From the sequence record PQ657772.1: a stretch of DNA of 64,000 nt. One strand, written 5' to 3'. Position numbers and translations under genes: made by a program. Positions 44,591 through 59,102 of the stretch are shown piece after piece; within the stretch, counting starts at the first letter, position 1; each line of letters starts with the position of its first letter. Under the pieces are notes generated by a model. It had not been told where the DNA came from. It did no database searches and saw only the letters and a program-made list of their open reading frames with translations.

Positions 44591-45001
44591 CTAATCGTGC
44601 CATTTAATAGGATACTCCGTCCCATTTATTGTATAAGATATAATCCATCCGTAATGAATAGGATGATTTTTGTCTGAAACAGGAATAAAATATAAAGATG
44701 TACTGGGGTTATAACTGAATAAATCGTTGTTACCAATTGTAAAATGTGATAACTCAATCTTCCTTGTACCTGTACTTGGACGAAGAACATTCTTAACACC
44801 GAAGACTGTACCTTGATATTTCTCGGAAAATTCAAACAATGCATCTGCAATTAAATCACGAAACTCCGCATGTATGGTTTCAAAAAAATCTATATTACAC
44901 GATGTTTTAATATCCTTGAACTCCTTATATAAAGAGCTTCTTGTATTCAAAAGAAATATTACTTTTTTAAGATCCTGAACTATTTCTGGATTCATATTCA
45001 T
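44591..45001 (-). CDS. Hypothetical protein
   Basis: Tiling ORF. Confidence 0.7.
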   Translation of the reverse strand: MNMNPEIVQDLKKVIFLLNTRSSLYKEFKDIKTSCNIDFFETIHAEFRDLIADALFEFSEKYQGTVFGVKNVLRPSTGTRKIELSHFTIGNNDLFSYNPSTSLYFIPVSDKNHPIHYGWIISYTINGTEYPIKWHD

Positions 45002-45218
45002 TTATCTCATTCTGTAACTTAAGCATCAAAATTTGCATATTAATTTTTTGTACAAGATGATTGAGAAATTTCTGTACTGTATCTTCTTGTTCTTTTGTAC
45101 CAAGATAAAATAACATATTAAATTCAGATAATCTCAGAGCGAAATCTTCCTCTCCACCTTGTAAACAAAAATCCCTGTACTTTGATGCATACAAATAACG
45201 GTTTATTTTTTTGTACAT
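44967..45218 (-). CDS. LGTNYQ-family small protein (dispersed copy)
   Basis: LFYLGTKEQEDTVQKFL. Confidence 0.75.
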   Translation of the reverse strand: MYKKINRYLYASKYRDFCLQGGEEDFALRLSEFNMLFYLGTKEQEDTVQKFLNHLVQKINMQILMLKLQNEINEYESRNSSGS

Positions 45219-45246: not shown

Positions 45247-45558
45247 TTATATGTCAATTTCAATGATCCTCCCTGACATACCTTGTATTAGCTTATCATA
45301 CATATCTAGCATCACTTTTTGAATACTAATTAATACTGGCATCGTGCAAATATCAATGTCGTATATTAAGCTGTACTGGAATAATTCCTCTTCCTGCATG
45401 TGTACTAAATTAGGTAAAAGATAATTGTCTGCCTCTTCATCCTGGTACTTGAAATGCATAACACCATCCTTTTTGTACAAAAGAATGTCAATATCACCTA
45501 ACTCTTCTGCATAACCAAAAATACATATACTCGATGTTTTTGCTATATTAAATTTCAT
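45247..45558 (-). CDS. FQxS-motif family protein
   Basis: QEEELFQYSLIYD. Confidence 0.78.
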   Translation of the reverse strand: MKFNIAKTSSICIFGYAEELGDIDILLYKKDGVMHFKYQDEEADNYLLPNLVHMQEEELFQYSLIYDIDICTMPVLISIQKVMLDMYDKLIQGMSGRIIEIDI

Positions 45559-46364
45559 GATTTATATTGTTCCTTAAAAACACCACAATGATAATTTTTA
45601 TTGTATTGTGTAATACTATAATCACACGGCATTGTCCCGCACGAAGCTCTGTGTTTTAAACGTTCCAATACCTTATCGTAATCTTTACTGAAAATTCCAT
45701 TTTCATTGGGCGTAGCAATCATTAATGCTTGCTCATATAAATCTTTTGTTCTTGTTGAACCATGCGAATGTTTGTTAAAATAAAATACATATTCAACTTC
45801 CCAATTACTTCTTAAATAGGATATTCCGTAATTGGTAATCATATAATAATGTAAATCCTTGTAATAATTGAATGTCTTATCTGTATTAATCAAAATATAT
45901 GAAGAACTATCATTGTCCTTAATAACAAATAAACGACCAATCTTATTTTCTTTATCTTTAACTAATTGTCTAATTTCATCACCTTCTTCAAATTTACGAT
46001 GCACTTCAATTACAGATTTAGCAATCCCAGTCTGTACTAAAGATTCATATGCTGCGTACATAAAATCACTTACATGACCTAAACCAACATCTTCTTTTCT
46101 TGGTGTCTCTGTTGTATTGACAAACATATTCAATAACTTTTCAATTGAAAAATCAGTACTGCAATCTTTATTAATTTTAATTTTTTCTCGAATCTCTTCC
46201 TTTAATGCATTAATATATTGCTCTTGTGCTGCTTCCTGATAATTTGTACCAAGATATAAACTCAAGGCAACTGAACCTTTGTAAGATGCTGATTTCTTTA
46301 AATCACCAGAACTAAATTTTTTCATAATCAAATTGGTTGCTTCAGATTCTGTTAAAAATTTCAT
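45555..46364 (-). CDS. Fusion of an N-terminal LGTNYQ domain to a 200-aa unknown domain
   Basis: MKFLTESE...LYLGTNYQEAAQEQYINALKEEI then unrelated sequence. Confidence 0.75.
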   Translation of the reverse strand: MKFLTESEATNLIMKKFSSGDLKKSASYKGSVALSLYLGTNYQEAAQEQYINALKEEIREKIKINKDCSTDFSIEKLLNMFVNTTETPRKEDVGLGHVSDFMYAAYESLVQTGIAKSVIEVHRKFEEGDEIRQLVKDKENKIGRLFVIKDNDSSSYILINTDKTFNYYKDLHYYMITNYGISYLRSNWEVEYVFYFNKHSHGSTRTKDLYEQALMIATPNENGIFSKDYDKVLERLKHRASCGTMPCDYSITQYNKNYHCGVFKEQYKS

Positions 46365-47100: not shown

Positions 47101-47475
47101 CTAGTATTGCACTGTTCTAATGAAAGTACCTTTACTCATGGATTTAAGCTTATGAACCTCTTCCTGCATACCCTTAATTAACCCTAAAGGTATAGGTAAA
47201 TCATGTACTAAGCTGTACTGAAAGTATTCTTCTTCAGATAAAGTACTAACATCTGGAATGCCAATTTTAGTTAGATAATCTTGATGTGTTGACCAATAAA
47301 TTATATCTTCAGTACTATTGTACTCCCCATATACTGAACAATATTGATGAATATCTTTCCTGTATCCTTGAGCAATAAAGAACTTATCTACTGCATTACC
47401 AGCATTAATAGAATTCACTTCGATTGTCACAGTACTTGAGCTTGTTTTTCCTTTACTATGCATATTAATCCCCAA
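47101..47475 (-). CDS. FQxS-motif family protein
   Basis: STLSEEEYFQYSLVHD. Confidence 0.78.
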   Translation of the reverse strand: MGINMHSKGKTSSSTVTIEVNSINAGNAVDKFFIAQGYRKDIHQYCSVYGEYNSTEDIIYWSTHQDYLTKIGIPDVSTLSEEEYFQYSLVHDLPIPLGLIKGMQEEVHKLKSMSKGTFIRTVQY

Positions 47476-47651
47476 ATTAGATATCGAACACTATCAGCTT
47501 GATAGTTAGTTCCTACTGTGTGTTTTAATATTAACTCATCTTTCAGTACTGAACATTCTGCATTAGATATAGGAAGAGAATTAATTCTTTGAATTTCTGG
47601 TCGCAAAATACCGCGAAGCTTGCGGTAATCTTTGTATGATAATATTTTCAT
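47427..47651 (-). CDS. LGTNYQ-family small protein
   Basis: HTVGTNYQADSVRY. Confidence 0.72.
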   Translation of the reverse strand: MKILSYKDYRKLRGILRPEIQRINSLPISNAECSVLKDELILKHTVGTNYQADSVRYLIWGLICIVKEKQAQVL

Positions 47652-47654: not shown

Positions 47655-47996
47655 TTAGTACTCAACGATGTGTTCTTCATAACCATTAAACTCCGGTTTA
47701 GTTTCTTTCATTAGGACTACCATTTTATGTACTAATGGCATAGGAAATTCTAAATCCCATACTAATGATTCTTGAAAGTATTCTTCTTCAGATAAAGTAC
47801 TTAAATCTTTAATATCAACGTGCTTGTATATTTTCTTTTCGTAATTAAGAAATGATATATATAAATCATTAACATAAGAATCATAAGTAATTGTGAATGG
47901 CTTACCCTTGTAGTCCATTACATCTTTACATAGACTGCATTTGATATATGTATGTTCTTCTGAACTGTATACATTGAGTTGTATATTAGTTTTCAT
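47655..47996 (-). CDS. FQxS-motif family protein (recent duplicate of 48011..48349)
   Basis: DLSTLSEEEYFQESLVWDLEFPMPLVHK. Confidence 0.8.
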   Translation of the reverse strand: MKTNIQLNVYSSEEHTYIKCSLCKDVMDYKGKPFTITYDSYVNDLYISFLNYEKKIYKHVDIKDLSTLSEEEYFQESLVWDLEFPMPLVHKMVVLMKETKPEFNGYEEHIVEY

Positions 47997-48010
47997 AGTT
48001 ACCTTATATA

Positions 48011-48349
48011 TTAATACTCAATAATGTGTTCTTCATAACCATTAGGTACAGGTTTAGTTTCTTTCATTAGTACTATCATCTTATGTACTAATGGCATAGG
48101 AAACTCCAAATCCCATACTAATGATTCTTGAAAGTATTCCTCTTCAGATAAAGTACTTAAATCTTCAATGTCAATGTGTTCGTATATGTTATATTTGTAA
48201 TCAGCAAAAGATATATAAAAACCTCTTGTATTATCATAAGTAAGTGCAAATGGCTTACCTTTGTAGTCCATTACAGAGTTACATGTATGGCATTTGATGT
48301 ATGTACTTGCAAATGATTTATATACCTTGAGTTTTATATTAGTTTTCAT
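48011..48349 (-). CDS. FQxS-motif family protein (recent duplicate of 47655..47996)
   Basis: DLSTLSEEEYFQESLVWDLEFPMPLVHK. Confidence 0.8.
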   Translation of the reverse strand: MKTNIKLKVYKSFASTYIKCHTCNSVMDYKGKPFALTYDNTRGFYISFADYKYNIYEHIDIEDLSTLSEEEYFQESLVWDLEFPMPLVHKMIVLMKETKPVPNGYEEHIIEY

Positions 48350-48590
48350 ATTTCTCTTTATTAGCTTGTTTAGATTGTGTGGTTTTATAGTGAATGAAAT
48401 CTATTAATGTAATCAAGTACAACGTCAAATAGTACTCTTGTTGATCTGTACCTAATGATACAAAGAACTTGTGCTCATAGATTAAAACCTGTTTCTCTTC
48501 AAATGGACATTTAATTCTCTGTATAGGCTTAAGTAAATGATAGTACTTATTAAATCTATGATACATTTCTAGTTCTGTCAGTACTTTCAT
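48339..48590 (-). CDS. LGTNYQ-family small protein
   Basis: SLGTDQQE; start moved to MKVLTELE. Confidence 0.75.
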   Translation of the reverse strand: MKVLTELEMYHRFNKYYHLLKPIQRIKCPFEEKQVLIYEHKFFVSLGTDQQEYYLTLYLITLIDFIHYKTTQSKQANKEKYEN

Positions 48591-48591
48591 A

Positions 48592-48813
48592 TTAAACACG
48601 TACTCCATTAGCAGTAGCATCACGTAAAGCTAACAAATACTTCTGTACTGCTTGCTCTTGATGATCTGTACCTAAAAGTATATACACCCATAATTCATTG
48701 TAGTGTACATCTTCTGTATAAGGGTTGTTGTAACTTTTTGATAATATAGCATCAAATTCAGATGCATGAACCCTTGTGAACTTAAGAATATCTTGTTGTG
48801 TTATGATTCTCAT
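48592..48813 (-). CDS. LGTNYQ-family small protein
   Basis: LLGTDHQE. Confidence 0.78.
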   Translation of the reverse strand: MRIITQQDILKFTRVHASEFDAILSKSYNNPYTEDVHYNELWVYILLGTDHQEQAVQKYLLALRDATANGVRV

Positions 48814-49025
48814 ATCTTTTCCTGTACTATCTGTATAAGAATACCTATGTGTGAATTAACAGTTCTCTCTTGATGCTGTGTTCCTAAGAGTGTCAGTACT
48901 ATCATATCTGAACGCAAAAGATTTTTTTCAAGTTCACTTATATCAGTTCTTGAATCAAGTGCCATATATTTGTGATTATTCTTCCTGAATAGTGCCAAGT
49001 ACTCTTGATTTGATATTTCCTTCAT
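48810..49025 (-). CDS. LGTNYQ-family small protein
   Basis: LLGTQHQE. Confidence 0.78.
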   Translation of the reverse strand: MKEISNQEYLALFRKNNHKYMALDSRTDISELEKNLLRSDMIVLTLLGTQHQERTVNSHIGILIQIVQEKI

Positions 49026-49261
49026 AGTTTATTCCTGATGCCATTTAAAAGTGCTCTAATATGCTCCTGTACGAATTTGTACTGACTGTCTGTTCCTAGA
49101 GTGAGTAGTAATCTTAAATCTGAACTTTTGATATGATATTCTAAATCATTATTTGATTCTTGCATCAGTTTCTTAAAGGATGAGAAGTTTGCAGCCATTA
49201 GTTCAATGTATTCTGCTGTTCCTAGGGGTTTGTGTATTGGCTGTTTGTGCTGTCTGTGCAT
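49022..49261 (-). CDS. LGTNYQ-family small protein
   Basis: TLGTDSQY. Confidence 0.78.
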   Translation of the reverse strand: MHRQHKQPIHKPLGTAEYIELMAANFSSFKKLMQESNNDLEYHIKSSDLRLLLTLGTDSQYKFVQEHIRALLNGIRNKL

Positions 49262-49473
49262 TTTAATTTTATTACCCTTTTGAGTGTATTAATGTAATTA
49301 TACACATTGGCTTCTTGATAGTTAGTTCCCAGTGTAGCTTGAACATAGATTTCATTTAACTTAATAATTTTATCAGTATCTGGAAGTTTTGATGTGTTAA
49401 TGGCAAATAACTTCGAAAACAGTCCATTTATGATTGTTAGGTATTCTACTTCGGTAATGATTCGCATTTGCAT
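49222..49473 (-). CDS. LGTNYQ-family small protein
   Basis: TLGTNYQE. Confidence 0.8.
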   Translation of the reverse strand: MQMRIITEVEYLTIINGLFSKLFAINTSKLPDTDKIIKLNEIYVQATLGTNYQEANVYNYINTLKRVIKLKCTDSTNSQYTNP

Positions 49474-49679
49474 TGGATAAACCTTTTTAGTTCTTTGATG
49501 TAATCATTAATATTACATTCTTGATAGTTAGTCCCTAGGGTAGAATTAACATAGATTTCACTCATTAGAATATTTTTTTCTTCATCAGGTAAATCTGTGG
49601 TCTTTGCTATATACAATTTTAGAATTAAACTACTTAATAGTTCGTGGTATTCACTTGGTGAAAGGATTTTCATTTGCAT
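49446..49679 (-). CDS. LGTNYQ-family small protein
   Basis: TLGTNYQE. Confidence 0.8.
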   Translation of the reverse strand: MQMKILSPSEYHELLSSLILKLYIAKTTDLPDEEKNILMSEIYVNSTLGTNYQECNINDYIKELKRFIQCKCESLPK

Positions 49680-49885
49680 GTTCTCAGTACAGATTCTTTA
49701 AGTTCATCGATGTAGTCCTCAACGAATTGCTCTTGGAAGTTAGTTCCAATATATAAAAGAACTCTTAAATCTGCTCTAAGTAACTCTTTTTCATCATCAT
49801 CTATATCAGACAATGTTATGTTTAAGAATTTACTTGTATTAAAGATTAACAATTCTGTTTGTTCACTGTGGCTTAAAATTTTCAT
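49670..49885 (-). CDS. LGTNYQ-family small protein
   Basis: YIGTNFQE. Confidence 0.8.
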   Translation of the reverse strand: MKILSHSEQTELLIFNTSKFLNITLSDIDDDEKELLRADLRVLLYIGTNFQEQFVEDYIDELKESVLRTCK

Positions 49886-50093
49886 AATCTCTTTTTGCTT
49901 TCCTCGACAGTAGGTACAAATACGATTCTTCGTATTGTGCTTGGAAGTTTGTGTTTAAGAGTCGAAACAACTTCTGTTCTGCTAGAACGAGTTGCTTATC
50001 TTCATAACAACTGTAGCGTATCAACTTTTTGTATTCGATGTTGATTACATCCATTACTATAAGCCCATGTTCATCATCTGTCAAGTGCTTCAT
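49863..50093 (-). CDS. LGTNYQ-family small protein
   Basis: LLNTNFQA. Confidence 0.78.
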   Translation of the reverse strand: MKHLTDDEHGLIVMDVINIEYKKLIRYSCYEDKQLVLAEQKLFRLLNTNFQAQYEESYLYLLSRKAKRDYENFKPQ

Positions 50094-50332
50094 GCTTTTT
50101 TTCTTTTCCTGATGTGTTTAGTTAAAAGGTATATTAGTTTTCTGATGTATTCTTCCTGATAGTTTGTTCCTAGGAGTGCAAGAAGTTTTGCTTCAACTAA
50201 AGCTAATTGACGTTCTTCGAATGTGTGTTCCAGTATGTACTTTGGGTTTGATTTTTTAGATATTGCACTATTAGTTTTCATTACAATCTTATGATATTCA
50301 TTAACTGTTAGGATTTTTAAATTCTTGAGCAT
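50090..50332 (-). CDS. LGTNYQ-family small protein
   Basis: LLGTNYQE. Confidence 0.8.
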   Translation of the reverse strand: MLKNLKILTVNEYHKIVMKTNSAISKKSNPKYILEHTFEERQLALVEAKLLALLGTNYQEEYIRKLIYLLTKHIRKRKKA

Positions 50333-50558
50333 GTACCTTTTCCTTTATAGAGAATTTAAGATATCGAAGCATACTTTCAATGTAATACTCTTGTCTGTCA
50401 GTTCCAAGAAAGTACAGGAGTTGAATGTATAAAACTTCTGCACTCCTTTCGGCATGTGACTTGTTTGTGTCGTTTGGAAGTTGATTTGTAAGTTTTCTGG
50501 ATTTAATTAATCGTTCTTTTAACTCATCGTCTGTTAAGTATTTCATTTCATTTTGCAT
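50301..50558 (-). CDS. LGTNYQ-family small protein
   Basis: FLGTDRQE. Confidence 0.8.
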   Translation of the reverse strand: MQNEMKYLTDDELKERLIKSRKLTNQLPNDTNKSHAERSAEVLYIQLLYFLGTDRQEYYIESMLRYLKFSIKEKVHAQEFKNPNS

Positions 50559-50778
50559 TTACTTTTTCCTTAATACTCATTACAAGATGTTCAATCATAT
50601 TTTGAACCATAAATTCTTGTTTATCAGTTCCAAGAACGTATGGTAGCTTCTGAAACAATACATTCGCAGACATTTCATATATTGATTGATTTGGAACGAA
50701 CTTAAGAGTAATGTTATTGGCTTTTAACATCTTCTCTTGAAATTCTTCATTCGTTAAGTATATCATTTCACTTTGCAT
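50548..50778 (-). CDS. LGTNYQ-family small protein
   Basis: VLGTDKQE. Confidence 0.8.
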   Translation of the reverse strand: MQSEMIYLTNEEFQEKMLKANNITLKFVPNQSIYEMSANVLFQKLPYVLGTDKQEFMVQNMIEHLVMSIKEKVNAK

Positions 50779-51004
50779 TTACTTTTTCCATAATAGTAAT
50801 TTTGAGATATTTAATTATACGTTCAACATGATACTCTTGCCTATCAGTTCCAAGAAGGTATGGTAATCTTTGGAATAAAACTTCTGCACTCCTTTCCGCT
50901 GGGGTTTGGTTTGGGTTGTGAGGAAGTTGATTTGTAAGTCTTTTGGATTTATCTAGTCTTTCTGTTAACTCATCATGTGTTAAGTATATCATTTCATTTT
51001 GCAT
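50768..51004 (-). CDS. LGTNYQ-family small protein
   Basis: LLGTDRQE. Confidence 0.8.
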   Translation of the reverse strand: MQNEMIYLTHDELTERLDKSKRLTNQLPHNPNQTPAERSAEVLFQRLPYLLGTDRQEYHVERIIKYLKITIMEKVNAK

Positions 51005-51240
51005 TTAATGTTTCTTACATAAATTGTCTGGATTAAACAATCAATCCAAGTTTGAATATATTGGTTTTGATACTGTGTGCCTAAGAGACTCTGCATTTTA
51101 AACTCTGCTTCAAGTTCATATCTCTTTTCTATAGAAAAGCTCAAATGACCATATTCTTTATCGTATCTTCTCAGTGCTTCCCCAATTCTATCAAATCTTT
51201 CTGCTAATCTGATGTTATTCACAATATTCATCGCATTCAT
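50989..51240 (-). CDS. LGTNYQ-family small protein
   Basis: LLGTQYQN. Confidence 0.8.
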   Translation of the reverse strand: MNAMNIVNNIRLAERFDRIGEALRRYDKEYGHLSFSIEKRYELEAEFKMQSLLGTQYQNQYIQTWIDCLIQTIYVRNIKCKMK

Positions 51241-51494
51241 CGATCAGTACACCTCAGTGGTTGGGTCATTTGATGAAAGTACAGCTTACCTTTGATTTCC
51301 AATAGTAACTCAGCAATTAATCGATTTACTTCTGGCTCTTGATAGTTTGTTCCCAATAATACACCCATCTTTAACTCACGCATCATAATCATTTTCTTAC
51401 TGTGTTGAATTTCTGGGTTGTGATAGATTGTATTACGTTTGTGCGTAATTTTTATCATACGCTCGGTATATTCATCTTTACTTAAATTGATCAT
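51237..51494 (-). CDS. LGTNYQ-family small protein
   Basis: LLGTNYQE. Confidence 0.8.
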   Translation of the reverse strand: MINLSKDEYTERMIKITHKRNTIYHNPEIQHSKKMIMMRELKMGVLLGTNYQEPEVNRLIAELLLEIKGKLYFHQMTQPLRCTDR

Positions 51495-51727
51495 TTTTTA
51501 TTCTCCAAAGCATCGCATTTATTTTCGATACAATTCATGAGTTCTCTAAGATAGTTTTTTACCTTACCTGCCTGATAGTTCGTCCCCAGGAAGTTGCATA
51601 ACTCTGCTTCTATCATTTTGATTCTTCTGTTATCAGGTTTCAATTTTTTGTTATTGAAGATTTGAATCCTTATATCCCTTGATGCATTTAAACGTTTTTG
51701 ATAATCATGGTAAGATAAATGAATCAT
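51491..51727 (-). CDS. LGTNYQ-family small protein
   Basis: FLGTNYQA. Confidence 0.8.
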   Translation of the reverse strand: MIHLSYHDYQKRLNASRDIRIQIFNNKKLKPDNRRIKMIEAELCNFLGTNYQAGKVKNYLRELMNCIENKCDALENKK

Positions 51728-51951
51728 TTACTTTGTATCTCTCTCTTGAGGGCATCAATTAACAACAGTACAGCATTCTCTTGATAGTTTGTTCCTAAGA
51801 CTGAAAGCATCTTAATCTCATTTACTACAATCAACTTCTTTGAGCGTTCAATAATGTTACTATTATAAACGGCGTTACGTGCTGGATAAGTTTTTGCAAG
51901 ACGTTCATAATATTCATCTTTACTTAAATTAATCATTTGCATTTCTCGCAC
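51724..51951 (-). CDS. LGTNYQ-family small protein
   Basis: VLGTNYQE. Confidence 0.8.
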   Translation of the reverse strand: MREMQMINLSKDEYYERLAKTYPARNAVYNSNIIERSKKLIVVNEIKMLSVLGTNYQENAVLLLIDALKREIQSK

Positions 51952-52177
51952 GTTTACTTAGTTTACTTCCAATGTATTTCTTAAGTGTAATTATATATTC
52001 CTCTACATAATACTCCTGATAGTTAGTTCCTAAGAATGCACATAGCTTTGTCTCACGCTTCATAATCATCTTATTTTCGTGTTTGTTTACTTCACCGAAA
52101 TGGATTTCATTAAGTTTAGGTAAGATTTTTGCTTGGCGTTCTTTATATTCAGATTTACTTAAATTAATCATTTGCAT
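51929..52177 (-). CDS. LGTNYQ-family small protein
   Basis: FLGTNYQE. Confidence 0.8.
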   Translation of the reverse strand: MQMINLSKSEYKERQAKILPKLNEIHFGEVNKHENKMIMKRETKLCAFLGTNYQEYYVEEYIITLKKYIGSKLSKRARNAND

Positions 52178-52386
52178 TTACTTTGGATCTCCTTGACTAA
52201 TGCATCAACCCACATGTCTATATACATTTGTTGATAGTTTGTCCCTATGAGTGCCCCTGCATAGAGTTCAGCTATCAATGCATGTTTTAGGTTGGCAGGG
52301 ATGCTCTTATCAGATTGAATCTTTACTCTTCTGTTGGCACATGTTTTCAGGAGTCTGATGTATTCAAAGCCTTGTAATTTTCTCAT
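52168..52386 (-). CDS. LGTNYQ-family small protein
   Basis: LIGTNYQQ. Confidence 0.8.
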   Translation of the reverse strand: MRKLQGFEYIRLLKTCANRRVKIQSDKSIPANLKHALIAELYAGALIGTNYQQMYIDMWVDALVKEIQSKCK

Positions 52387-52598
52387 TCTTTTGATATCAC
52401 CTTGTTACGTAAGGCACTTAACAATACGTCAGTGTAGATGTTTTGATAGTTTGTTCCTACGAATGCACCCAACTTCATTTCAGCTATTATAACACATTTA
52501 TCCTCTTGTGCAATAGACTTGTCTAAAGAAATACTAACAACTTTCCTTCTTATAGCTTGTAACCTCCAATGATACTGATACTCATTTAGGGTTATCAT
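52383..52598 (-). CDS. LGTNYQ-family small protein
   Basis: FVGTNYQN. Confidence 0.8.
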   Translation of the reverse strand: MITLNEYQYHWRLQAIRRKVVSISLDKSIAQEDKCVIIAEMKLGAFVGTNYQNIYTDVLLSALRNKVISKE

Positions 52599-52833
52599 TC
52601 TCTCGCCTCCATATCTCGGTTCTAATGTGTTGACATTGTGCTTCGATGAACATATCTATTGATTTGGCAATTGCGTTTTTATCTGTGCCTGTCATCAGTA
52701 CAAGCATCTCGGCCTCACAGTGAAGTAAACGCATGATATCATAGGGTAATATTCCAGATACCGTGTCATAGTGTTTCTGTGCCAGTGTCTGCAATAGTTT
52801 ACAATACATTTTGTGATTTAGTCTGTGTCGCAT
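52582..52833 (-). CDS. LGTNYQ-family small protein (divergent)
   Basis: LMTGTDKN. Confidence 0.65.
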   Translation of the reverse strand: MRHRLNHKMYCKLLQTLAQKHYDTVSGILPYDIMRLLHCEAEMLVLMTGTDKNAIAKSIDMFIEAQCQHIRTEIWRRENDNPK

Positions 52834-53090
52834 TGTTTATTCCATTCTTTTTTGGCTCTCTGGGTTTTATATTGGATTTGGTTTCTTAATGCTGATAAGT
52901 ATCGTTGAATGAACAGATCTTGATAGTTTGTTCCAATGAATTTCATAAGATAAAGTTCACCGTTGATAACATCCACTTCAGGTGCACCATATAAGGCATT
53001 GTTTTTTCTAAGGGCATGGATTAAAGAGAATAGGGCAGTTTGATACTCAACTCCTGATAAAGTCTTCATGTTTTGTGAGCAAATAATCAT
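52818..53090 (-). CDS. LGTNYQ-family small protein
   Basis: FIGTNYQD. Confidence 0.8.
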   Translation of the reverse strand: MIICSQNMKTLSGVEYQTALFSLIHALRKNNALYGAPEVDVINGELYLMKFIGTNYQDLFIQRYLSALRNQIQYKTQRAKKEWNKQCDTD

Positions 53091-53304
53091 CTAGTTTATC
53101 CTGTATAACATTCGTTAATTGTTCGATATATTCTGTGCAAAACTTATCTTGATATTGAGTCCCCATAAAGTACAGCAACCATAGCTCATTAACTTTAGCT
53201 CGCATTTGGTTCCATGTAAGGCTGGGGTCATCGTAGACTATCCTTGCTATAGGGGTTAGTTTACGGACTATAGTTTCATATTCATCTAGTGTTAAGTGTT
53301 TCAT
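53047..53304 (-). CDS. LGTNYQ-family small protein
   Basis: FMGTQYQD. Confidence 0.8.
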   Translation of the reverse strand: MKHLTLDEYETIVRKLTPIARIVYDDPSLTWNQMRAKVNELWLLYFMGTQYQDKFCTEYIEQLTNVIQDKLDDYLLTKHEDFIRS

Positions 53305-53525
53305 TTACCTAAATCCCTGACATGACATTTTAAGGCCGTGATGTGGTTGTCAACCATAACCTCCTGATAGTTTGTTCCTACAAATGGTATTAATGTTGAG
53401 TCTGTTAGTATAACATACTTTTCATTGGATGTTAGTGATTCATCATCGTAAACTTGAAGTCTAAAGTTCTTCCCTTGTTCTAATCGTTTAAGATATTCTT
53501 GGGTGTTTATGTCTTTCATTTGCAT
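53301..53525 (-). CDS. LGTNYQ-family small protein
   Basis: FVGTNYQE. Confidence 0.8.
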   Translation of the reverse strand: MQMKDINTQEYLKRLEQGKNFRLQVYDDESLTSNEKYVILTDSTLIPFVGTNYQEVMVDNHITALKCHVRDLGK

Positions 53526-53734
53526 TTGTCCCTTATTAAATCAGTGAGGGCAACTATGTGTGCAACAACATACTCTTCCTGAAAGTTCGTCCCCAGTACA
53601 GCCATCATGCGTATATCGGTGGTGTTTATCCTGTGTTCCCTTACACATAAACCTTCTGTGTGAGGAAGTGTAAAATATTTGTTTATTGCAGCAATGATAA
53701 TTTTATTCTTCTCGGAATTACTTAAATGTTTCAT
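53516..53734 (-). CDS. LGTNYQ-family small protein
   Basis: VLGTNFQE. Confidence 0.8.
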   Translation of the reverse strand: MKHLSNSEKNKIIIAAINKYFTLPHTEGLCVREHRINTTDIRMMAVLGTNFQEEYVVAHIVALTDLIRDKCK

Positions 53735-53943
53735 AGTTTGCTCTTAATGTATTTCTGGAGTGCAATTATATACTCATTCAAGAAGTGCTCCTGATAATCT
53801 GTGCCGAGGAATGCACCCAATAGTATATCATTTTCCAATACTAATGCTAAGTTCAAATCATCAGTCTCTTCATATACTATGAGAATTTCAAGTTGTCTTG
53901 CAGCGACGCGTTCGGTATATAGATTTGAGTTAATGCTATTCAT
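53731..53943 (-). CDS. LGTNYQ-family small protein
   Basis: FLGTDYQE. Confidence 0.8.
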   Translation of the reverse strand: MNSINSNLYTERVAARQLEILIVYEETDDLNLALVLENDILLGAFLGTDYQEHFLNEYIIALQKYIKSKL

Positions 53944-54152
53944 AGTTTACTCTTAATGTAATTCTGGAGTGCAATTAAGTATTCCCCTACATAATACACC
54001 TGAAAGTCTGTATCCAAAAATGCACCCATAAGTAAATCTTTTTCTAATACCCTTGATAAGTTAAGGTCTGCATTTGAATTGTATATAATTAAGATTTTAT
54101 TCTGGACAGAAACAAAACGTATCTTATATTCTTCTGGTGTTAAAAAAATCAT
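53940..54152 (-). CDS. LGTNYQ-family small protein
   Basis: FLDTDFQV. Confidence 0.78.
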   Translation of the reverse strand: MIFLTPEEYKIRFVSVQNKILIIYNSNADLNLSRVLEKDLLMGAFLDTDFQVYYVGEYLIALQNYIKSKL

Positions 54153-54358
54153 AGTTTACTCTTAATATCTTCTATTAAAAAATGAATCCAATCGTCAACA
54201 TACTCTTCCTGATGGTTTGTGTTCAGTACAGCCAACATGCGGATCTCTGCTCTTGCAACTTGGATTTCAGTTTTAGAAAGGTCTTTGCTGATATCAAACA
54301 TTAAGTCCATGTATTTCAAGATAAGACCGAATGATTGGGTTCGTGTTATAGTTTTCAT
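54149..54358 (-). CDS. LGTNYQ-family small protein
   Basis: VLNTNHQE. Confidence 0.78.
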   Translation of the reverse strand: MKTITRTQSFGLILKYMDLMFDISKDLSKTEIQVARAEIRMLAVLNTNHQEEYVDDWIHFLIEDIKSKL

Positions 54359-54555
54359 TGTTTCCTCGTGGACAATATTTCATTTTTCAATGCATCCATA
54401 TATTGAATCACCCATCTTCCCTGATAGCTTGTACCCAATGTAATCAAAAGGTATAACTCAATTCGTTCTAAGTTTGTGTCTGTGTTATAAATCTTTACCA
54501 TGTTTTTACGTAACAGTTCTTGATAATCTTCTTTATTTAAAATACGCATTTTCAT
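54355..54555 (-). CDS. LGTNYQ-family small protein
   Basis: TLGTSYQG. Confidence 0.78.
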   Translation of the reverse strand: MKMRILNKEDYQELLRKNMVKIYNTDTNLERIELYLLITLGTSYQGRWVIQYMDALKNEILSTRKQ

Positions 54556-54749
54556 AGTCTACCTTTTATGTCCCTTCGTAATTCTTGTAAGTATAGTTCG
54601 ATATACTTTTCTTGATAGTTAGTTCCTATGAAAAGTTTCATAACCAATTCACGCTTATATGCAATACCACGGATATGTGACATATGTAGGATATATGCCA
54701 TGTTGGATATGAGTGTGTGGTTGTGCTCTTCTTGAGTTAAAATACGCAT
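54552..54749 (-). CDS. LGTNYQ-family small protein (first gene of array)
   Basis: FIGTNYQE; GGAG RBS. Confidence 0.8.
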   Translation of the reverse strand: MRILTQEEHNHTLISNMAYILHMSHIRGIAYKRELVMKLFIGTNYQEKYIELYLQELRRDIKGRL

Positions 54750-54779: not shown

Positions 54780-54807
54780 ATAATATACGATTCATATAAA
54801 AAGTCAA
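54780..54807 (-). promoter_or_regulatory. Promoter driving the LGTNYQ array
   Basis: TTGACT-16 nt-TATTAT about 30 nt upstream of the first ATG. Confidence 0.65.
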
Positions 54808-54998
54808 TAACATTTTATAAGTAATACCCCTTTATCGAAGTCGCTAAGGTTACCCGCCCTTTAGCCCCCTACGCATTTTGCCATAGTCCAATCCCTTTTT
54901 ATTCATAAAAGTCAAGGGATTACCTATGCATTTTTTTAACGCTGAAGTTTAAAAATGCCTTGACTTTTTTATGATTCAGTACTAAATCCTTTTACGCA

Positions 54999-55208
54999 TT
55001 AATCCTTCGTTACGCTTACGATTATCTGTGTATCCCCATAGTCCTGCCATACTTCCACGCCAGCCGTCGCCCTGGTTAGTCGTGCTGTCATCTGCTTAAT
55101 GGTCTTAGGCTTTAGTGGAACCTGTTGCAGTACTGTACGCATAGCACCATCGACGTTATCATGTACGCCTGCAATAGTGCCTAGAACGTTGTATACTGTA
55201 TAGATCAT
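54999..55208 (-). CDS. Early-region hypothetical protein
   Basis: AGGAG RBS preceded by hairpin AGGCCGCT-CTCT-AGCGGCCT. Confidence 0.75.
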   Translation of the reverse strand: MIYTVYNVLGTIAGVHDNVDGAMRTVLQQVPLKPKTIKQMTARLTRATAGVEVWQDYGDTQIIVSVTKD

Positions 55209-55276
55209 GTGTATGTACTCCTGATATAGTTAAGGCCGCTAGAGAGCGGCCTATGATGTTTGATGATGTGTAACGC

Positions 55277-55678
55277 TTACAACCCTAAGATAGTGCGTGC
55301 TTCGTTACGTTCCGTACACAGCTGCATGATGTGAGCAAGTAAGTCCTTGCTAATGTATCCGGTGTTCATAGCTTCACGAATAGATACATCATAAGCACCG
55401 AACCCAGTGCGAACGATACGCACATCATTCAGGTTAGTATTATAGATACCGCCGAGATCAACGGCTTCGAATACTACATCAACAGAATATTCATTGTTGC
55501 CATCGTGGAAGTTTTCCAGTGCAATAGTATTGGAAACCGCCCAACGTTTGCAGTTTCCAATGATGCGGCACTGTTCCGGTTGGATAGTGCCATTACTTAC
55601 AGCGTACTCCAGTGCATCTTTACCAAAAGTCCGAGCCAGTACTAAAACGTCAGCGAAGGAAGTGATTGAGAAGGTCAT
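55277..55678 (-). CDS. Early-region hypothetical protein
   Basis: AAGGAG RBS; start moved to MTFSITSF. Confidence 0.78.
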   Translation of the reverse strand: MTFSITSFADVLVLARTFGKDALEYAVSNGTIQPEQCRIIGNCKRWAVSNTIALENFHDGNNEYSVDVVFEAVDLGGIYNTNLNDVRIVRTGFGAYDVSIREAMNTGYISKDLLAHIMQLCTERNEARTILGL

Positions 55679-55698
55679 GATAAAACTCCTTAATTTAG

Positions 55699-55760
55699 GA
55701 GGGAGAACCATTTCCCCCTCTCTATGTAAAACATTATACATGAATCTAAGTACTATGCAA
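55699..55760 (-). promoter_or_regulatory. Early promoter + stem-loop cassette
   Basis: TTGCAT-16-TATAAT, hairpin GAGGGGGAAATGGTTCTCCCTC. Confidence 0.78.
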
Positions 55761-55767
55761 GTACTTT

Positions 55768-56100
55768 TTACATTTTGATACCTGGATTCAGGTAGCGGTG
55801 AGATCCATATTCTGGATCGGTTTCGGTCCAGTACTGTAAATCTATAGTACCTTTAGCGTTAATCTTATCTACCAGCTTATTCATCTTAGCGTATACTACA
55901 TCAGCATCGATGCGTTTAAAGCCAGTGGCTTTAGTGAAGTAGTAGTGATTTGCTTCACTATCATTCAGGATGTACCGAGAACCGTTTGCCGTTTGTGCGA
56001 TAATGATTGAGTATTCTACGTTACGGTCGAGGCCGTCGATGAATACAGAGGAAACATTAGTACGGATGAAAGCTTTAACGATAGCGATTGAAGTAGTCAT
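55768..56100 (-). CDS. Early-region hypothetical protein
   Basis: AGGAG RBS; C-terminal IDLQYWTETDPEYGS. Confidence 0.78.
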   Translation of the reverse strand: MTTSIAIVKAFIRTNVSSVFIDGLDRNVEYSIIIAQTANGSRYILNDSEANHYYFTKATGFKRIDADVVYAKMNKLVDKINAKGTIDLQYWTETDPEYGSHRYLNPGIKM

Positions 56101-56118
56101 TTTGAATCTCCTAACTTT

Positions 56119-56182
56119 GTGGGCCGTCGCACCATTGCCGCCCTACGAGATACATTATCGCAGTACTGATATACTTTGTCAA
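56119..56182 (-). promoter_or_regulatory. Early promoter + stem-loop cassette
   Basis: TTGACA-17-GATAAT, GC hairpin before RBS. Confidence 0.72.
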
Positions 56183-56251
56183 TACTTTTTTTATTAATAG
56201 TTTTAGTTCCACCAGCAGATAGTTACTCACCGTTATTAACTATATATTTTG

Positions 56252-56335
56252 GATACACCTATGCACCCTGTGGGCTAGTTTTTGTCTATGCGTATATAAT
56301 AGCAAAGGGACTGACCGGAGTCAATCCCTTTTTTT
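56252..56335 (-). repeat. Terminator/promoter/small-RNA module, copy 1
   Basis: 41-bp core TATATAATAGCAAAGGGACTGACCGGAGTCAATCCCTTTTT identical at 56293, 59053, 62060. Confidence 0.85.
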
Positions 56336-56346
56336 ATTCTTTTTTG

Positions 56347-56547
56347 TTAGATGATTCTCCAATCATCAACGATCATGGTAAGATACCGAACCAGTGATTC
56401 GAGTGATTCGTGTTCTCGATAGTCTGCCGCTCCACCAGCGGTACAAGTACAGCCGATTAAGCCGTTTTGTAGTTCCTGGATCTTTACGTCGATCTGGTTG
56501 GCTTTAGCTTCTTTCAGTACTTCAACCAGGGCGATAGCGATAGACAT
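56347..56547 (-). CDS. Early-region hypothetical protein
   Basis: GGAG RBS after cassette. Confidence 0.75.
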   Translation of the reverse strand: MSIAIALVEVLKEAKANQIDVKIQELQNGLIGCTCTAGGAADYREHESLESLVRYLTMIVDDWRII

Positions 56548-56569
56548 AATGTTTTACTCCAAACTATTG

Positions 56570-56630
56570 GCGGGAGAACTATTCCCCCGCTCTATGTAAA
56601 ACATTATACATTACTGGTTAGTACTGTCAA
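56570..56630 (-). promoter_or_regulatory. Early promoter + stem-loop cassette
   Basis: TTGACA-16-TATAAT, hairpin CGGGGGAATAGTTCTCCCG. Confidence 0.8.
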
Positions 56631-56637
56631 ATAGTTT

Positions 56638-56895
56638 TTATGAAATATCTTCGATGTAGTCGGCCCATTTCATTTTTTCAGTACTGTCAATGGCTACCGG
56701 ATTATTTGGATCAAACCATTCACCATCACCGCAATACATACCCACGGCTACGGTTTTATAGCCATCCTGGGCCGTACACCACGACATTGCACGATAGATA
56801 TGGCCTTTAACTGGTTGCAGTACTGGTAACGTTTTATGGTCTTCTACGTAGGCCATAGCTTGAGGATTTACCCGATATTGTGTGAACTGATCCAT
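56638..56895 (-). CDS. Early-region hypothetical protein
   Basis: AAGGGG RBS; upstream TTGACA at 56947-56952. Confidence 0.75.
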   Translation of the reverse strand: MDQFTQYRVNPQAMAYVEDHKTLPVLQPVKGHIYRAMSWCTAQDGYKTVAVGMYCGDGEWFDPNNPVAIDSTEKMKWADYIEDIS

Positions 56896-56971
56896 TATGT
56901 TTCCCCTTGTAGTTAGTAAAGTTATTACATCAGTACTATCAAGCTATGTCAATAGTACTGAAATAAAACTT

Positions 56972-57196
56972 TTAGATTAGATTATTGAGGCCGTCAATGG
57001 TAGACTCACTTTCTTCTTTCTCCCATTGTCGGTAGTACTTCCATGCTTCATGATAGGTGGCGATTAGTTCATCTTTTTGATCCTGGTTACATGCCAGTAC
57101 TGAATCACGGTGAGCGGTGTTATAGATAGAATCGAATGATTTCTTCTCTTCTGCCAGGTTAGCTACTTCCCGCATCAGTTCATCAAAGTTAGCCAT
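56972..57196 (-). CDS. Early-region acidic helical protein
   Basis: AAGGAG RBS. Confidence 0.75.
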   Translation of the reverse strand: MANFDELMREVANLAEEKKSFDSIYNTAHRDSVLACNQDQKDELIATYHEAWKYYRQWEKEESESTIDGLNNLI

Positions 57197-57213
57197 TTTA
57201 TTACTCCTTTTAG

Positions 57214-57271
57214 TGGGGGAGGATATCTCCCCCTATGCAAAACATTATACTTTGTTTTAGTTATTATGCAA
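57214..57271 (-). promoter_or_regulatory. Early promoter + stem-loop cassette
   Basis: TTGCAT-16-TATAAT, hairpin GGGGGAGATATCCTCCCCC. Confidence 0.8.
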
Positions 57272-57527
57272 GTACTTTTTTCATATAAACATTAAATTCT
57301 ACACCGCCGTAACCTTCCACGATGATATGTTTTGCGTTATCACGTTTGCACATAGTGAAACCATCGTTTACGTGTTTTGCATTTTCCAGGGCGACATCAC
57401 CGATAGCGGCACATACGGCACTAATAACAGTATTCCGCAAAGTACTGGTATCATTGGCGGTCATAGTAGTTTGCAGTACTACGTTGTCGTATACGTGTGC
57501 ATTGATAGTGATTTCGATAGTGTTCAT
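57264..57527 (-). CDS. Early-region hypothetical protein
   Basis: AGGAG RBS; start moved to MNTIEIT. Confidence 0.75.
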   Translation of the reverse strand: MNTIEITINAHVYDNVVLQTTMTANDTSTLRNTVISAVCAAIGDVALENAKHVNDGFTMCKRDNAKHIIVEGYGGVEFNVYMKKVLA

Positions 57528-57545
57528 GGTGTATCTCCTGGACTT

Positions 57546-57607
57546 GAGGGGAAACCATTTCCCCCTCTCGATATAAAACATTATACGTTAATCTAACTAC
57601 AATGCAA
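57546..57607 (-). promoter_or_regulatory. Early promoter + stem-loop cassette
   Basis: TTGCAT-16-TATAAT, hairpin GAGGGGGAAATGGTTTCCCCTC. Confidence 0.8.
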
Positions 57608-57614
57608 GTACTTT

Positions 57615-57806
57615 TTAAATTTTATTTCCGATATAGTCCGGCATGTTCTTTTCAGTCATACGCTTTGCTAATGTCTGCATATGGCTTATAGCGTTCAAGG
57701 TGTCTTCCTCCAGGGATGAATCAAGATAATCAGGATCATTCTTCACCTTGCAATGATTATGATATCGTAGTACTGCCAGTACTTTTTTAACTTCTTCTAC
57801 TGTCAT
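57615..57806 (-). CDS. Early-region hypothetical protein
   Basis: Tiling ORF. Confidence 0.7.
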   Translation of the reverse strand: MTVEEVKKVLAVLRYHNHCKVKNDPDYLDSSLEEDTLNAISHMQTLAKRMTEKNMPDYIGNKI

Positions 57807-58075
57807 AATAAGTACCCCACTTCGTTAGCTTTCAGGTTAGTATCAATCATCAGTGGATTTTTGTAGTTCACAAAACGAGTAGTTTTCTCGATAGCGAAAC
57901 CCATATAATCCAGCTTACTAACAGTACATTCATTCTTAAAAACTTCTTTCGCTGCATCGATGGCTGATTGCATGGATAACCGACCATCTAAATTAATGTT
58001 TCCAAATGATCCACCAGCAGAAGTAGGATTACCGTTCATATCTTTAATGATCATAGTAGCGGAGTAGCTGGACAT
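57803..58075 (-). CDS. Early-region hypothetical protein
   Basis: AAGGA RBS after cassette. Confidence 0.75.
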   Translation of the reverse strand: MSSYSATMIIKDMNGNPTSAGGSFGNINLDGRLSMQSAIDAAKEVFKNECTVSKLDYMGFAIEKTTRFVNYKNPLMIDTNLKANEVGYLL

Positions 58076-58099
58076 AATTTTGTTTCCTTTTATTGGTGT

Positions 58100-58164
58100 G
58101 GGGAGAACTATTCTCCCCTTGATGTAAACTATTATACAGTACTGATATACTTTGTCAAATACTT
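58100..58164 (-). promoter_or_regulatory. Early promoter + stem-loop cassette (65 bp identical to 58594..58658)
   Basis: TTGACA-AAGTATATCAGTACTG-TATAAT, hairpin GGGGAGAATAGTTCTCCCC. Confidence 0.85.
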
Positions 58165-58572: not shown

Positions 58573-58593
58573 GATTTTATTCCTTTTAGTATC

Positions 58594-58658
58594 GGGGAGA
58601 ACTATTCTCCCCTTGATGTAAACTATTATACAGTACTGATATACTTTGTCAAATACTT
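58594..58658 (-). promoter_or_regulatory. Early promoter + stem-loop cassette (65 bp identical to 58100..58164)
   Basis: Exact direct repeat. Confidence 0.85.
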
Positions 58659-58878: not shown

Positions 58879-58900
58879 CGTCTTGATTCCTTTTAGTACC

Positions 58901-58961: not shown

Positions 58962-59006
58962 GTACTTTTTATCAAATAGTTTTCAGTACTGAATACTTAT
59001 ATAATA

Positions 59007-59094: not shown

Positions 59095-59102
59095 AATCTT
59101 TT

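Follow-up and report, generated by a model that had tools for sequence, protein, structure and literature searches.

Large eukaryotic DNA viruses carry multigene families near the repeats at their genome ends, among them the poxvirus Bcl-2-like helical family and the MGF of African swine fever virus. These consist of diverged paralogues of a small scaffold, are variable among isolates and non-structural, and bind host proteins. Among bacteriophages, the SPO1 host-takeover module, the T5 pre-early region, and the terminal-repeat genes of Twort-like phages are made up of unrelated small early genes, each with its own promoter. Poxvirus gene accordions of the K3L type hold recent, near-identical copies, and their copy number is variable within populations.

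For jumbo phages, one sentence in Hua et al. (2017, mBio, PMC5646251) mentions an array in phage 121Q, attributes it to tandem duplication, and counts more than 30 genes, called “very similar” without being named. It is probably the orthologue of the array described here, since 121Q gp319-gp341 form an orthologous array of the same protein family (phrog_4148), although the members in our phage average 25% identity rather than being “very similar”. We found no earlier account of how this family folds, of where its array sits relative to the terminal repeat, of how selection acts on it, or of how widely it is distributed.

The window, that is, the whole stretch of DNA analysed, comprises the final 64 kb of the 356-kb genome of Escherichia phage EC.P1, a jumbo phage of E. 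coli belonging to the Asteriusvirus type. Like the poxvirus and African swine fever virus families, its array consists of many diverged paralogues of a small scaffold beside a terminal repeat, but the host is bacterial and the family has no detectable fold relationship to them. As in the blocks of SPO1, T5, Twort-like phages, and PA5oct (PMC7318152), genes for small proteins lie at the genome end, with strong host-type promoters directing transcription inward; unlike those blocks, a single family is present 29 times in one coupled operon just outside the repeat. Like the K3L-type accordion it repeats a small viral gene in tandem, but the EC.P1 array is ancient, diverged, and positionally stable. 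The main features are as follows.

54848..64000, minus strand, inner 9.2 kb of the ~21-kb direct terminal repeat, immediate-early region
63081..63437, minus strand, GNAT acetyltransferase gene in the terminal repeat
59103..59687, minus strand, weak kinase-like gene in the terminal repeat
54780..54807, minus strand, candidate sigma-70 promoter TTGACT-16-TATTAT, 10/12 (motif match)
48339..54749, minus strand, tandem array of 29 family-A (phrog_4148) genes, slots 1-29 (ORFs and profile)
50084-50056, minus strand, promoter-like site in slot 22, 11/12, kept in 8/9 relatives
47655..48349, minus strand, two family-B paralogues (48011-48349 and 47655-47996) directly 3' of the array, same operon
47427..47651, minus strand, outlying family-A member, “slot 30”, two family-B genes between it and the array (profile)
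45555..46364, minus strand, 269-aa fusion protein, family-A domain at the N-terminus plus a 195-aa part (profile and homology)
44967..45218, minus strand, outlying divergent family-A member, 83 aa (profile)
32109..32327, minus strand, outlying divergent family-A member, 72 aa (profile)
31940..32131, minus strand, outlying family-A member, 63 aa (profile)

The 29 head-to-tail minus-strand ORFs fill positions 48339-54749, as originally predicted, and every one of them (29/29) scores E 6e-17 to 2e-27 against a profile built from the array members; the match to phrog_4148 reaches E 2e-25. The family is not limited to this interval, because the profile search found five further members in the window. 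With consensus starts the array proteins are 64-85 aa long, and 26 of the 28 junctions are overlaps (15 of the 4-nt ATGA type and 11 longer ones of 8-40 nt), the other two being gaps of 1-2 nt. The slots, numbered in transcription order from the high coordinate, are listed below (all minus strand; ORF and profile match).

54552..54749, minus, slot 1, 65 aa
54355..54549, minus, slot 2, 64 aa
54149..54358, minus, slot 3, 69 aa
53940..54152, minus, slot 4, 70 aa; closest paralogue slot 5 (51%)
53731..53943, minus, slot 5, 70 aa
53516..53734, minus, slot 6, 72 aa
53301..53519, minus, slot 7, 72 aa; presence varies among relatives
53047..53304, minus, slot 8, 85 aa; conserved promoter-like site inside
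52818..53069, minus, slot 9, 83 aa
52582..52833, minus, slot 10, 83 aa; most divergent motif of the array
52383..52598, minus, slot 11, 71 aa
52168..52386, minus, slot 12, 72 aa
51929..52171, minus, slot 13, 80 aa; AlphaFold-modelled member; missing in several close relatives
51724..51936, minus, slot 14, 70 aa
51491..51727, minus, slot 15, 78 aa
51237..51494, minus, slot 16, 85 aa
50989..51240, minus, slot 17, 83 aa; orthologue identity 40%-100% across relatives
50768..51004, minus, slot 18, 78 aa; promoter-like site inside
50548..50778, minus, slot 19, 76 aa
50301..50558, minus, slot 20, 85 aa
50090..50332, minus, slot 21, 80 aa
49863..50093, minus, slot 22, 76 aa; without annotation in GenBank PQ657772
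49670..49885, minus, slot 23, 71 aa
49446..49673, minus, slot 24, 75 aa
49222..49467, minus, slot 25, 81 aa
49022..49261, minus, slot 26, 79 aa
48810..49025, minus, slot 27, 71 aa
48592..48813, minus, slot 28, 73 aa
48339..48590, minus, slot 29, 83 aa from the consensus start (longest ORF to 48623); 3' end overlaps the following gene, a family-B member

The array begins about 98 nt past the inner edge of the direct terminal repeat (first ATG 98-99 nt beyond the repeat end); this repeat ends at 20,993 in fEgEco12 (PMC13070987) and at 21,525 in vB_Ec-M-J. The part of the repeat within the window contains eight perfect 12/12 sigma-70 promoters, with further perfect ones in the rest of the repeat, and no family-A member. 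As the predicted location just after the early region implied, the array lies directly downstream of this promoter-dense repeat and is transcribed in the same direction as its immediate-early genes. In PA5oct, a distant relative, host RNA polymerase transcribes the genes of the terminal repeat at high levels early on (PMC7318152). Because the array starts 98 nt inward of the repeat edge and shares this direction, it would be an early or delayed-early gene block, its timing and translation being read from architecture. A single promoter at 54780-54807 had been proposed; the candidate site does sit in the 98 nt between the repeat edge and the first ATG, and is kept in 7/9 relatives, but promoter-like sites inside slots 8, 18, and 22 are kept in 8-9 of 9 relatives, so that one promoter is probably too simple a view and the array probably has three internal promoters besides the upstream one. 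The products are not virion proteins: none of gp467c-gp489c is present in the virion proteome table of phAPEC6 (PMC7247149).

The AlphaFold model of slot 13 is a very confident three-helix bundle (pLDDT 96.9; helices H6-25, H31-45, and H52-79), not the two-helix hairpin first proposed. The members would share a buried core and, at one pole of the bundle, a conserved clasp made up of the N-terminal M-x-x-L strand, the E-Y that opens helix 1, and G-T-x-x-Q, which connects helices 2 and 3. The turn had been described as invariant, but among the 29 array members this holds for T alone (29/29); motif Q and the downstream L are found in 28/29, motif G and the start M in 26/29, L4 and E8 in 22/29, Y9 in 18/29, and motif N and motif Y in 16/29 each. 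The expected combination of a conserved core and motif with highly diverse surfaces was borne out, pI ranging from 4.4 to 10.0 across family A and pairwise protein identity between array paralogues from 13 to 64%. A Foldseek search with the slot 13 model gave no significant match to solved structures, including the known anti-defence proteins suggested for comparison, and no fold similarity was found to known anti-defence folds, inhibitors, sponges, or decoys. T4 Vs.4 (an Acb2-type cyclic-nucleotide sponge, PDB 7uq2), an early phage protein that is also small and entirely helical, was among the hits of that search, but its match is not significant (E 5.3, TM 0.42, rmsd 17.8 A).

Slot order is conserved across 8-9 relatives, with 25-30 members per locus, and positional orthology holds genus-wide and in an uncultivated relative. 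Presence varies for slots 7, 13, 19, 20, 24, and 25; slot 13, for example, is 100% identical in some relatives, with a best match of ~52% in other close relatives. Salmonella phage SD-15_S21 and E. coli phage PBECO4 have nearly identical slot content, which speaks against the array simply conferring specificity for a host genus. No gene-length DNA repeat was found in the array, and adjacent copies are more alike than distant ones (31% vs ~24% identity; permutation p<1e-4). Within one phage pair, individual slots differ widely in dS (0.02 to 1.33), and it is this variation, not that of dN/dS, that accounts for the uneven slot identities. The array is thus a real, old, and conserved multigene family and not a transient amplification.

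We propose, with a probability of roughly 0.4, that the array is an ancient set of non-enzymatic binding modules, expressed early and preserved by selection. It would encode about 30 small soluble three-helix-bundle proteins and would have expanded in the ancestral Asteriusvirus jumbo phage, one local tandem duplication after another; the local origin is suggested by the greater likeness of adjacent copies, and the old age by the missing DNA-level repeat together with paralogue identities of 64% or less. Since then the slots would have been retained one by one under moderate purifying selection, with occasional loss, gain, or swap of whole cassettes between phages via recombination, as the spread of dS within one pair and the contrast in slot 13 identity suggest. 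The architecture is that of a tightly packed operon, presumably read with translational coupling. Sequence and fold searches of family A gave no enzyme signal and no catalytic features; given this, the shared core and clasp, and the widely differing surfaces, stoichiometric binding seems the most likely mode, and small binders or decoys would be the most plausible function. Each slot may supply a small module that binds its own host or competitor molecule while the cell is being taken over, by analogy with the diversified helical immune-evasion families at the genome ends of large eukaryotic DNA viruses.

Another reading is that the copies are genomic ballast, duplicated DNA that fills an enlarged capsid under weak selection and has little individual function. 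The head-size ratchet of Hua et al. (2017) proposes tandem duplication as a route to jumbo size and cites an array in 121Q (PMC5646251), individual slots are dispensable in nature, and the pooled orthologue dN/dS of 0.35-0.45 is relaxed relative to most neighbouring terminal-repeat genes (0.08-0.4), a difference compatible with weak individual importance. That value is nevertheless clearly below 1, so the copies do not drift neutrally, and the constraint fits the fold, in that the most constrained alignment columns track helix-core periodicity and the G-T-x-x-Q motif has a dN/dS of 0.14. Moreover, all 30 EC.P1 copies of the array region (the 29 array genes and 47427-47651) span the profile at full length, slot order persists between phages whose divergence reaches a dS of ~1, the family is retained in three lineages, and the promoter-like sites and translational coupling are conserved. 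We therefore regard ballast as unlikely.

The tight coupling, which favours balanced co-production, would also suit a single assembly, in which the co-translated paralogues form a hetero-oligomeric helical scaffold, a lattice, or a nucleoid-organising coat in the infected cell; the shared core and conserved pole could provide a common interface, and acidic and basic members are mixed. Such an assembly is quite improbable, however, because single slots have been lost or replaced in natural relatives while the others remain, because the RaK2-like Klebsiella phages and one uncultivated lineage have family A in scattered clusters of 1-3 only, and because the members are missing from the virion proteome.

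Equally doubtful is an adaptor library, in which the conserved pole would dock all members on a common machine (a protease, RNA polymerase, or a phage enzyme) and the variable faces would recruit targets. It would explain why conservation among polar residues (E-Y, G-T-x-x-Q, and the acidic residue after it) lies at a single end of the predicted bundle, with variation elsewhere, and why family-A domains are fused N-terminally to unrelated domains in both EC.P1 and RaK2; the 195-aa part of the EC.P1 fusion is homologous to RaK2 ORF380, where it stands alone. On the other hand, the pole may serve only to hold the fold together and bind nothing, which would count against the binding-module proposal as well.

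The motif places a long amphipathic helix after a turn with a small residue; together with the basic character of 19 of 33 family-A members and weak Foldseek matches to TetR-type proteins (E 6-9), this might suggest DNA-binding regulators, with the motif acting as a helix-turn-helix in small transcription factors or sigma-factor mimics. This is very unlikely: no HTH Pfam family matched at its cutoff, none of the thousands of HTH structures solved so far matched the fold significantly, and the predicted helices of 20, 15, and 28 residues with connections of 5-6 residues make an up-down-up bundle instead of HTH geometry. In addition, the start of helix 3 is conserved where differing specificities should make it vary, and 10 members are strongly acidic.

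The original prediction of a gene accordion, a recent and reversible amplification with positive selection making the copies diverge, can draw on the slight variation in slot content and on a dN/dS of ~1.1-1.6 in slots 15 and 28, which reflects very few changes because dS there is 0.11 or less, but it is largely refuted and scarcely credible given the stable slot order, the 25-30 copies, the missing DNA repeat, closest paralogues that are just 64% identical, and the purifying dN/dS. No region, site, or column of family A has a significant dN/dS>1, so the signature expected of an arms race with host defences is missing as well, which weighs against the binding-module proposal too. The youngest duplicate group consists of slots 18, 19, and 20 (up to 64% identity), and slot 1 shares just 58% identity with its orthologues in ph0011, PBECO4, and 121Q.

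The tandem array of small ORFs is a real paralogous family that looks translated, has an orphan three-helix fold, and forms a coupled operon that borders the terminal repeat on its inner side. Its source, Escherichia phage EC.P1 (PQ657772.1), is a member of the Asteriusvirus group of jumbo myoviruses, together with 121Q, PBECO4, and phAPEC6; the genome has 356,444 bp, the window being its final 64 kb (window position = record position − 292,444). All 29 minus-strand ORFs of the original prediction at 48339-54749 were found to be present, and a profile built from them matches each one at E-values of 6e-17 to 2e-27. We refer to these genes and their relatives as family A and to their places in the array as slots 1–29, numbered in the order of transcription from the high-coordinate end. 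Pairwise protein identity within the array averages 25% (range 13–64%). Of the G-T-N-Y-Q-E turn, which had been described as invariant, only the Thr is so; Q and a downstream Leu are each present in 28/29 members and G in 26/29. The 28 junctions consist of 15 ATGA overlaps of 4 nt, 11 longer overlaps, and two gaps of 1–2 nt. The array makes up about 5% of the EC.P1 gene count. GenBank labels all genes of the region as hypothetical and holds no CDS for slot 22 (49863-50093, minus strand), which is a full-length match to the profile and has orthologues in all relatives examined. The paralogue and family scan of EC.P1 covered the window and record positions 1–16,000, and the same array-built profile detected five more family-A members elsewhere in the window:

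47427-47651, minus strand: outlying family-A member
44967-45218, minus strand: outlying family-A member
32109-32327, minus strand: outlying family-A member
31940-32131, minus strand: outlying family-A member
45555-46364, minus strand: 269-aa fusion protein with a family-A domain as its N-terminus

The family corresponds to phrog_4148 of the PHROGs collection (function unknown), which was matched by eight tested members and the N-terminus of the fusion protein at E-values of 4e-10 to 2e-25, over about positions 1–72 of a 74-position profile. For family A, no entry of Pfam, NCBIfam, or PADLOC exceeded its cutoff; PADLOC returned just two isolated chance-level matches. A profile search of PDB sequences found no related solved structure for family A; the best match (E = 0.05), which lay in the N-terminal portion of a nuclease with a ParB domain, was judged to be due to chance. 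The AlphaFold2 model, made with an alignment of the 33 window paralogues (pLDDT 96.9, pTM 0.82), has helices at residues 6–25, 31–45, and 52–79 and a one-residue beta-bridge from residue 2 to the invariant Thr. In other words, a three-helix bundle is predicted instead of the helical hairpin originally proposed. Foldseek found no significant match to this model in the PDB (best E = 2.7), and among predicted viral structures (BFVD) its matches were all uncharacterised and belonged to the family itself. T4 Vs.4 was rejected as a fold relative (E = 5.3, rmsd 17.8). A helix-turn-helix identity was also rejected: no Pfam family of this type reached the cutoff, TetR-type fold matches in the PDB were weak (E = 6–9), and the predicted helices, with 20, 15, and 28 residues, do not have suitable lengths. 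As for known anti-defence proteins, with which a comparison had been suggested, there was no significant sequence or fold match to a characterised member in PADLOC, the PDB, or BFVD.

The position of the array can be fixed by comparison with related phages. The direct terminal repeat of fEgEco12 is 20,993 bp long, with experimental support (PMC13070987), and the array of this phage lies at 21,091–27,280; in vB_Ec-M-J, the repeat is annotated at 1–21,525 and the first array gene begins at 21,624. The repeat/array junction shares 98% identity with the window, which puts the inner repeat edge at about window position 54848, 98 nt upstream of the first array ATG. Within 54848-64000, the minus strand, which is the gene strand, carries eight perfect 12/12 sigma-70 promoters (TTGACA-16/17-TATAAT) in 9 kb, approximately one per gene, and the genes are spaced 60–300 nt apart. 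Three more perfect promoters lie in the remaining repeat (positions 1–11400 of locus L035, the start of the record), to about record position 11.3 kb. A profile search of the terminal repeat found no member of family A anywhere in it. The features of this region are as follows:

63494, 61845, 61505, 61234, 60804, 58652, 58158, and 56630, minus strand: first hexamers of the eight perfect promoters
63081-63437, minus strand: GNAT acetyltransferase in the repeat (Pfam E = 4e-9, above cutoff)
59103-59687, minus strand: weak protein-kinase-like ORF in the repeat (E = 0.004, below cutoff)

The acetyltransferase and the kinase-like ORF are candidates for early enzymes that modify the host. In the distant relative PA5oct, the terminal-repeat genes are highly transcribed early in infection by the host RNA polymerase (PMC7318152). 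The repeat of EC.P1 has the appearance of an unusually pure immediate-early host-polymerase region. It also contains three identical 28-nt perfect palindromes (62098-62071, 59091-59064, and 56331-56304, minus strand), each with a TTGACT −35-like hexamer followed by a TG-extended TATTAT; the element resembles an operator-promoter unit, present in several copies, that belongs to a second class of promoters. Just inside the repeat edge (about 54894-54925, minus strand) lies an inverted repeat of 8 bp that has a loop of 16 nt and again contains TTGACT; 8/9 relatives keep it, and it might serve in regulation or in end recognition.

The array differs from these immediate-early repeat genes in that it lies outside the repeat, has no intergenic spacing, and is headed by a weaker TTGACT-16-TATTAT site (54807-54780, minus strand; 10/12), and it was not accepted as a set of typical genes of that kind, which lie in the repeat with a consensus promoter each. 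The head site, which uses the same two hexamers as the palindromes, is kept in 7/9 relatives. PBECO4 has a distinct insert upstream of the array, an extra 366-nt gene between the repeat edge and the array with a good promoter of its own, and SD-15_S21 is without the upstream promoter region; the operon entry point itself thus varies between isolates. Promoter-like sites within slots 8, 18, and 22 are kept in 8–9 of nine relatives, with some letters changed, and because of this conservation the array may be read as several overlapping units. It should be mentioned that the total of promoter-like sites in the array region is not above chance, and these sites are candidates only.

Orthologous loci from eight relatives (vB_Ec-M-J, Ecwhy_1, Turkey3, ph0011, PBECO4, SD-15_S21, phAPEC6, and 121Q) each contain 25–30 family-A profile matches. 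The slot order is the same in all eight and in one metagenomic contig, slots 7, 13, 19, 20, 24, and 25 being variably present among the relatives. Within one phage pair, slot identity ranges from about 40% to 100% and per-slot dS from 0.02 to 1.33; this unevenness of dS suggests that slot identities reflect a mosaic exchange of cassettes between phages, not local acceleration. Pairwise Nei-Gojobori counts, which are crude and ignore recombination, gave a pooled dN/dS of 0.35–0.45 in every comparison. The motif has the lowest regional value (0.14), helices 1–3 and the loop have 0.37–0.43, and the same counts show no significant non-synonymous excess at any alignment column, all of which speaks against the diversifying selection of the original prediction. 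The most constrained columns show a helical periodicity that matches the AlphaFold2 model, which argues that the ORFs are translated. Neutral drift, also raised in that prediction, does not agree with a dN/dS below 1 and a constraint that follows the fold.

The array had further been seen as a gene accordion. However, Tandem Repeats Finder (TRF) detects no gene-length DNA tandem repeat in it, no two paralogues exceed 64% identity around the mean of 25%, and instead of fluctuating in copy number the loci stay within 25–30 members with positional orthology kept. Neighbouring paralogues are 31% identical, compared with about 24% for distant ones (permutation p < 1e-4), and for 18 of the 29 genes the nearest paralogue is no more than two slots away. 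Taken together, the data on order, selection, repeats, and neighbours suggest that the array was built long ago by local tandem duplication and has been stably inherited. To judge from these comparisons, it is old and syntenic, under moderate purifying selection, and subject to cassette exchange. The protein-level constraint and the absence of repeats at the nucleotide level speak against a role of the repeated genes as DNA or RNA. Scans with Rfam and for tRNAs were negative.

With one member as the query, tblastn returned 34 phage records, each from an Asteriusvirus-type coliphage or a Salmonella phage. When the profile was run against 1.84 billion representative proteins, it gave 95 clusters at E ≤ 1e-3 (45 assigned to the loci examined, 50 not) and no cellular homologue; 93 of the clusters are 52–96 aa in length, and the other two 121 aa and 269 aa. 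When IMG/VR was scanned with degenerate DNA motifs, 18 loci were returned, 16 of them by chance. Such scans and contig look-ups revealed that Klebsiella phage RaK2 and its relatives carry family A: a stretch of 45 kb holds at least 12 members, arranged in clusters of 1–3, two having C-terminal extensions. An uncultivated Asteriusvirus (L031) has its own array of about 28 genes. Twelve members are scattered over 20 kb of a 40.8-kb contig (L032; Logan SRR34023385, GC 29%) that is not similar at the nucleotide level to the loci examined from Asteriusvirus or RaK2; on this sequence evidence, the contig represents a third carrier lineage, an AT-rich uncultivated phage. The scattered clusters in the RaK2-like phages and in this contig indicate that the large tandem block is a peculiarity of the Asteriusvirus lineage and that the domain is older.

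Tentatively, with a probability of about 0.4, we regard the array as a set of early-expressed binders in which each slot has its own target. Expression would be early or delayed-early, and the members would act by binding, without catalysis, one target per slot. The closest functional analogy may be with large eukaryotic DNA viruses, whose genome ends carry diversified families of small helical proteins: like such terminal multigene families, the array lies beside the terminal repeat (98 nt inward of its edge), consists of diverged paralogues, has products that are absent from the virion proteome, and varies in slot presence and alleles among isolates. If the members bind host or competitor factors, they would form a catalogue of targets important early in infection and a bacterial-virus parallel to those families.

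That the genes are weakly selected ballast seems unlikely. The flanking genes have dN/dS values of 0.08–0.5, and by this comparison the array is somewhat relaxed, yet clearly not neutral. If it were ballast, it would give concrete support for a capsid-size ratchet in the growth of jumbo genomes. In the model, the conserved polar residues (E-Y where helix 1 begins, G-T-x-x-Q between helices 2 and 3, and the next acidic residue) all lie at one end of the bundle, a pole whose surface exposure we infer from helix periodicity only and which may be either a folding clasp or a docking site. As a dock, this pole together with the N-terminal strand might attach all members to one host or phage machine, to which about 30 variable faces would each recruit a different cellular target; such a library of adaptors, quite improbable in our view, would be a bacterial-virus counterpart of the F-box or BTB substrate-receptor families on an orphan three-helix fold. 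Members with one predicted scaffold might also co-assemble into a structure, which is likewise quite doubtful; in phAPEC6, the 62 virion proteins include no array product (gp467c-gp489c; PMC7247149). DNA-binding regulators are very unlikely. Of the members, 19 are basic, four are near neutral, and 10 are acidic, and this spread of pI (4.4–10.0) implies that family A is not uniformly made up of DNA mimics or of nucleic-acid binders. The accordion under diversifying selection is, after the results on repeats and dN/dS, hardly credible.

Hua et al. (2017; PMC5646251) mentioned a tandem array in 121Q in a sentence without gene names, and the phAPEC6 paper repeats the point (PMC7247149). Because no other paralogue family in the examined part of the genome is as large as family A, this is very probably the array described here. 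The existence of the array is thus probably not new, and the family is already catalogued in PHROGs; its fold, its exact position at the repeat edge, its selection regime, the slot mosaicism, and the wider distribution were not found in the literature searched. Jumbo phage genes are mostly small orphans, kept in large numbers. Among expansions of a single family in phages, the array is one of the largest seen, and it offers a natural series: one scaffold, predicted with confidence, in about 30 diverged copies, with positional orthologues in dozens of sequenced relatives and simpler scattered versions in two other lineages.

Other families occur in the same early arm. In the fusion protein (45555-46364), the family-A domain is joined to a 195-aa part homologous to RaK2 ORF380, which is a stand-alone protein; the fused form was found only in EC.P1 and phage UB, and the 195-aa partner has no Pfam or PDB relative. 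Family B has at least 12 members of 100–190 aa within 22418-48349 (minus strand), interspersed with the outlying family-A genes, and is marked by an invariant F-Q within an acidic E-E-x-F-Q-x-S-L motif. Its AlphaFold model is a beta-sheet with two helices (pLDDT 78), for which the PDB gave no significant fold match (best E = 0.12). Seven genes for proteins of about 150–160 aa within 27317-36347 (minus strand) form a third paralogous family. The members are as follows:

48011-48349, minus strand: family B
47655-47996, minus strand: family B
47101-47463, minus strand: family B
46473-46796, minus strand: family B
45247-45558, minus strand: family B
37069-37530, minus strand: family B
36713-37069, minus strand: family B
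36357-36716, minus strand: family B
30438-30797, minus strand: family B
30110-30448, minus strand: family B
28196-28558, minus strand: family B
22418-22999, minus strand: family B
27317-27799, minus strand: third family
28551-29033, minus strand: third family
34035-34478, minus strand: third family
34456-34944, minus strand: third family
34947-35387, minus strand: third family
35384-35854, minus strand: third family
35856-36347, minus strand: third family

The early arm appears to be largely made of local duplications. Further small families of 2–3 members are also present.
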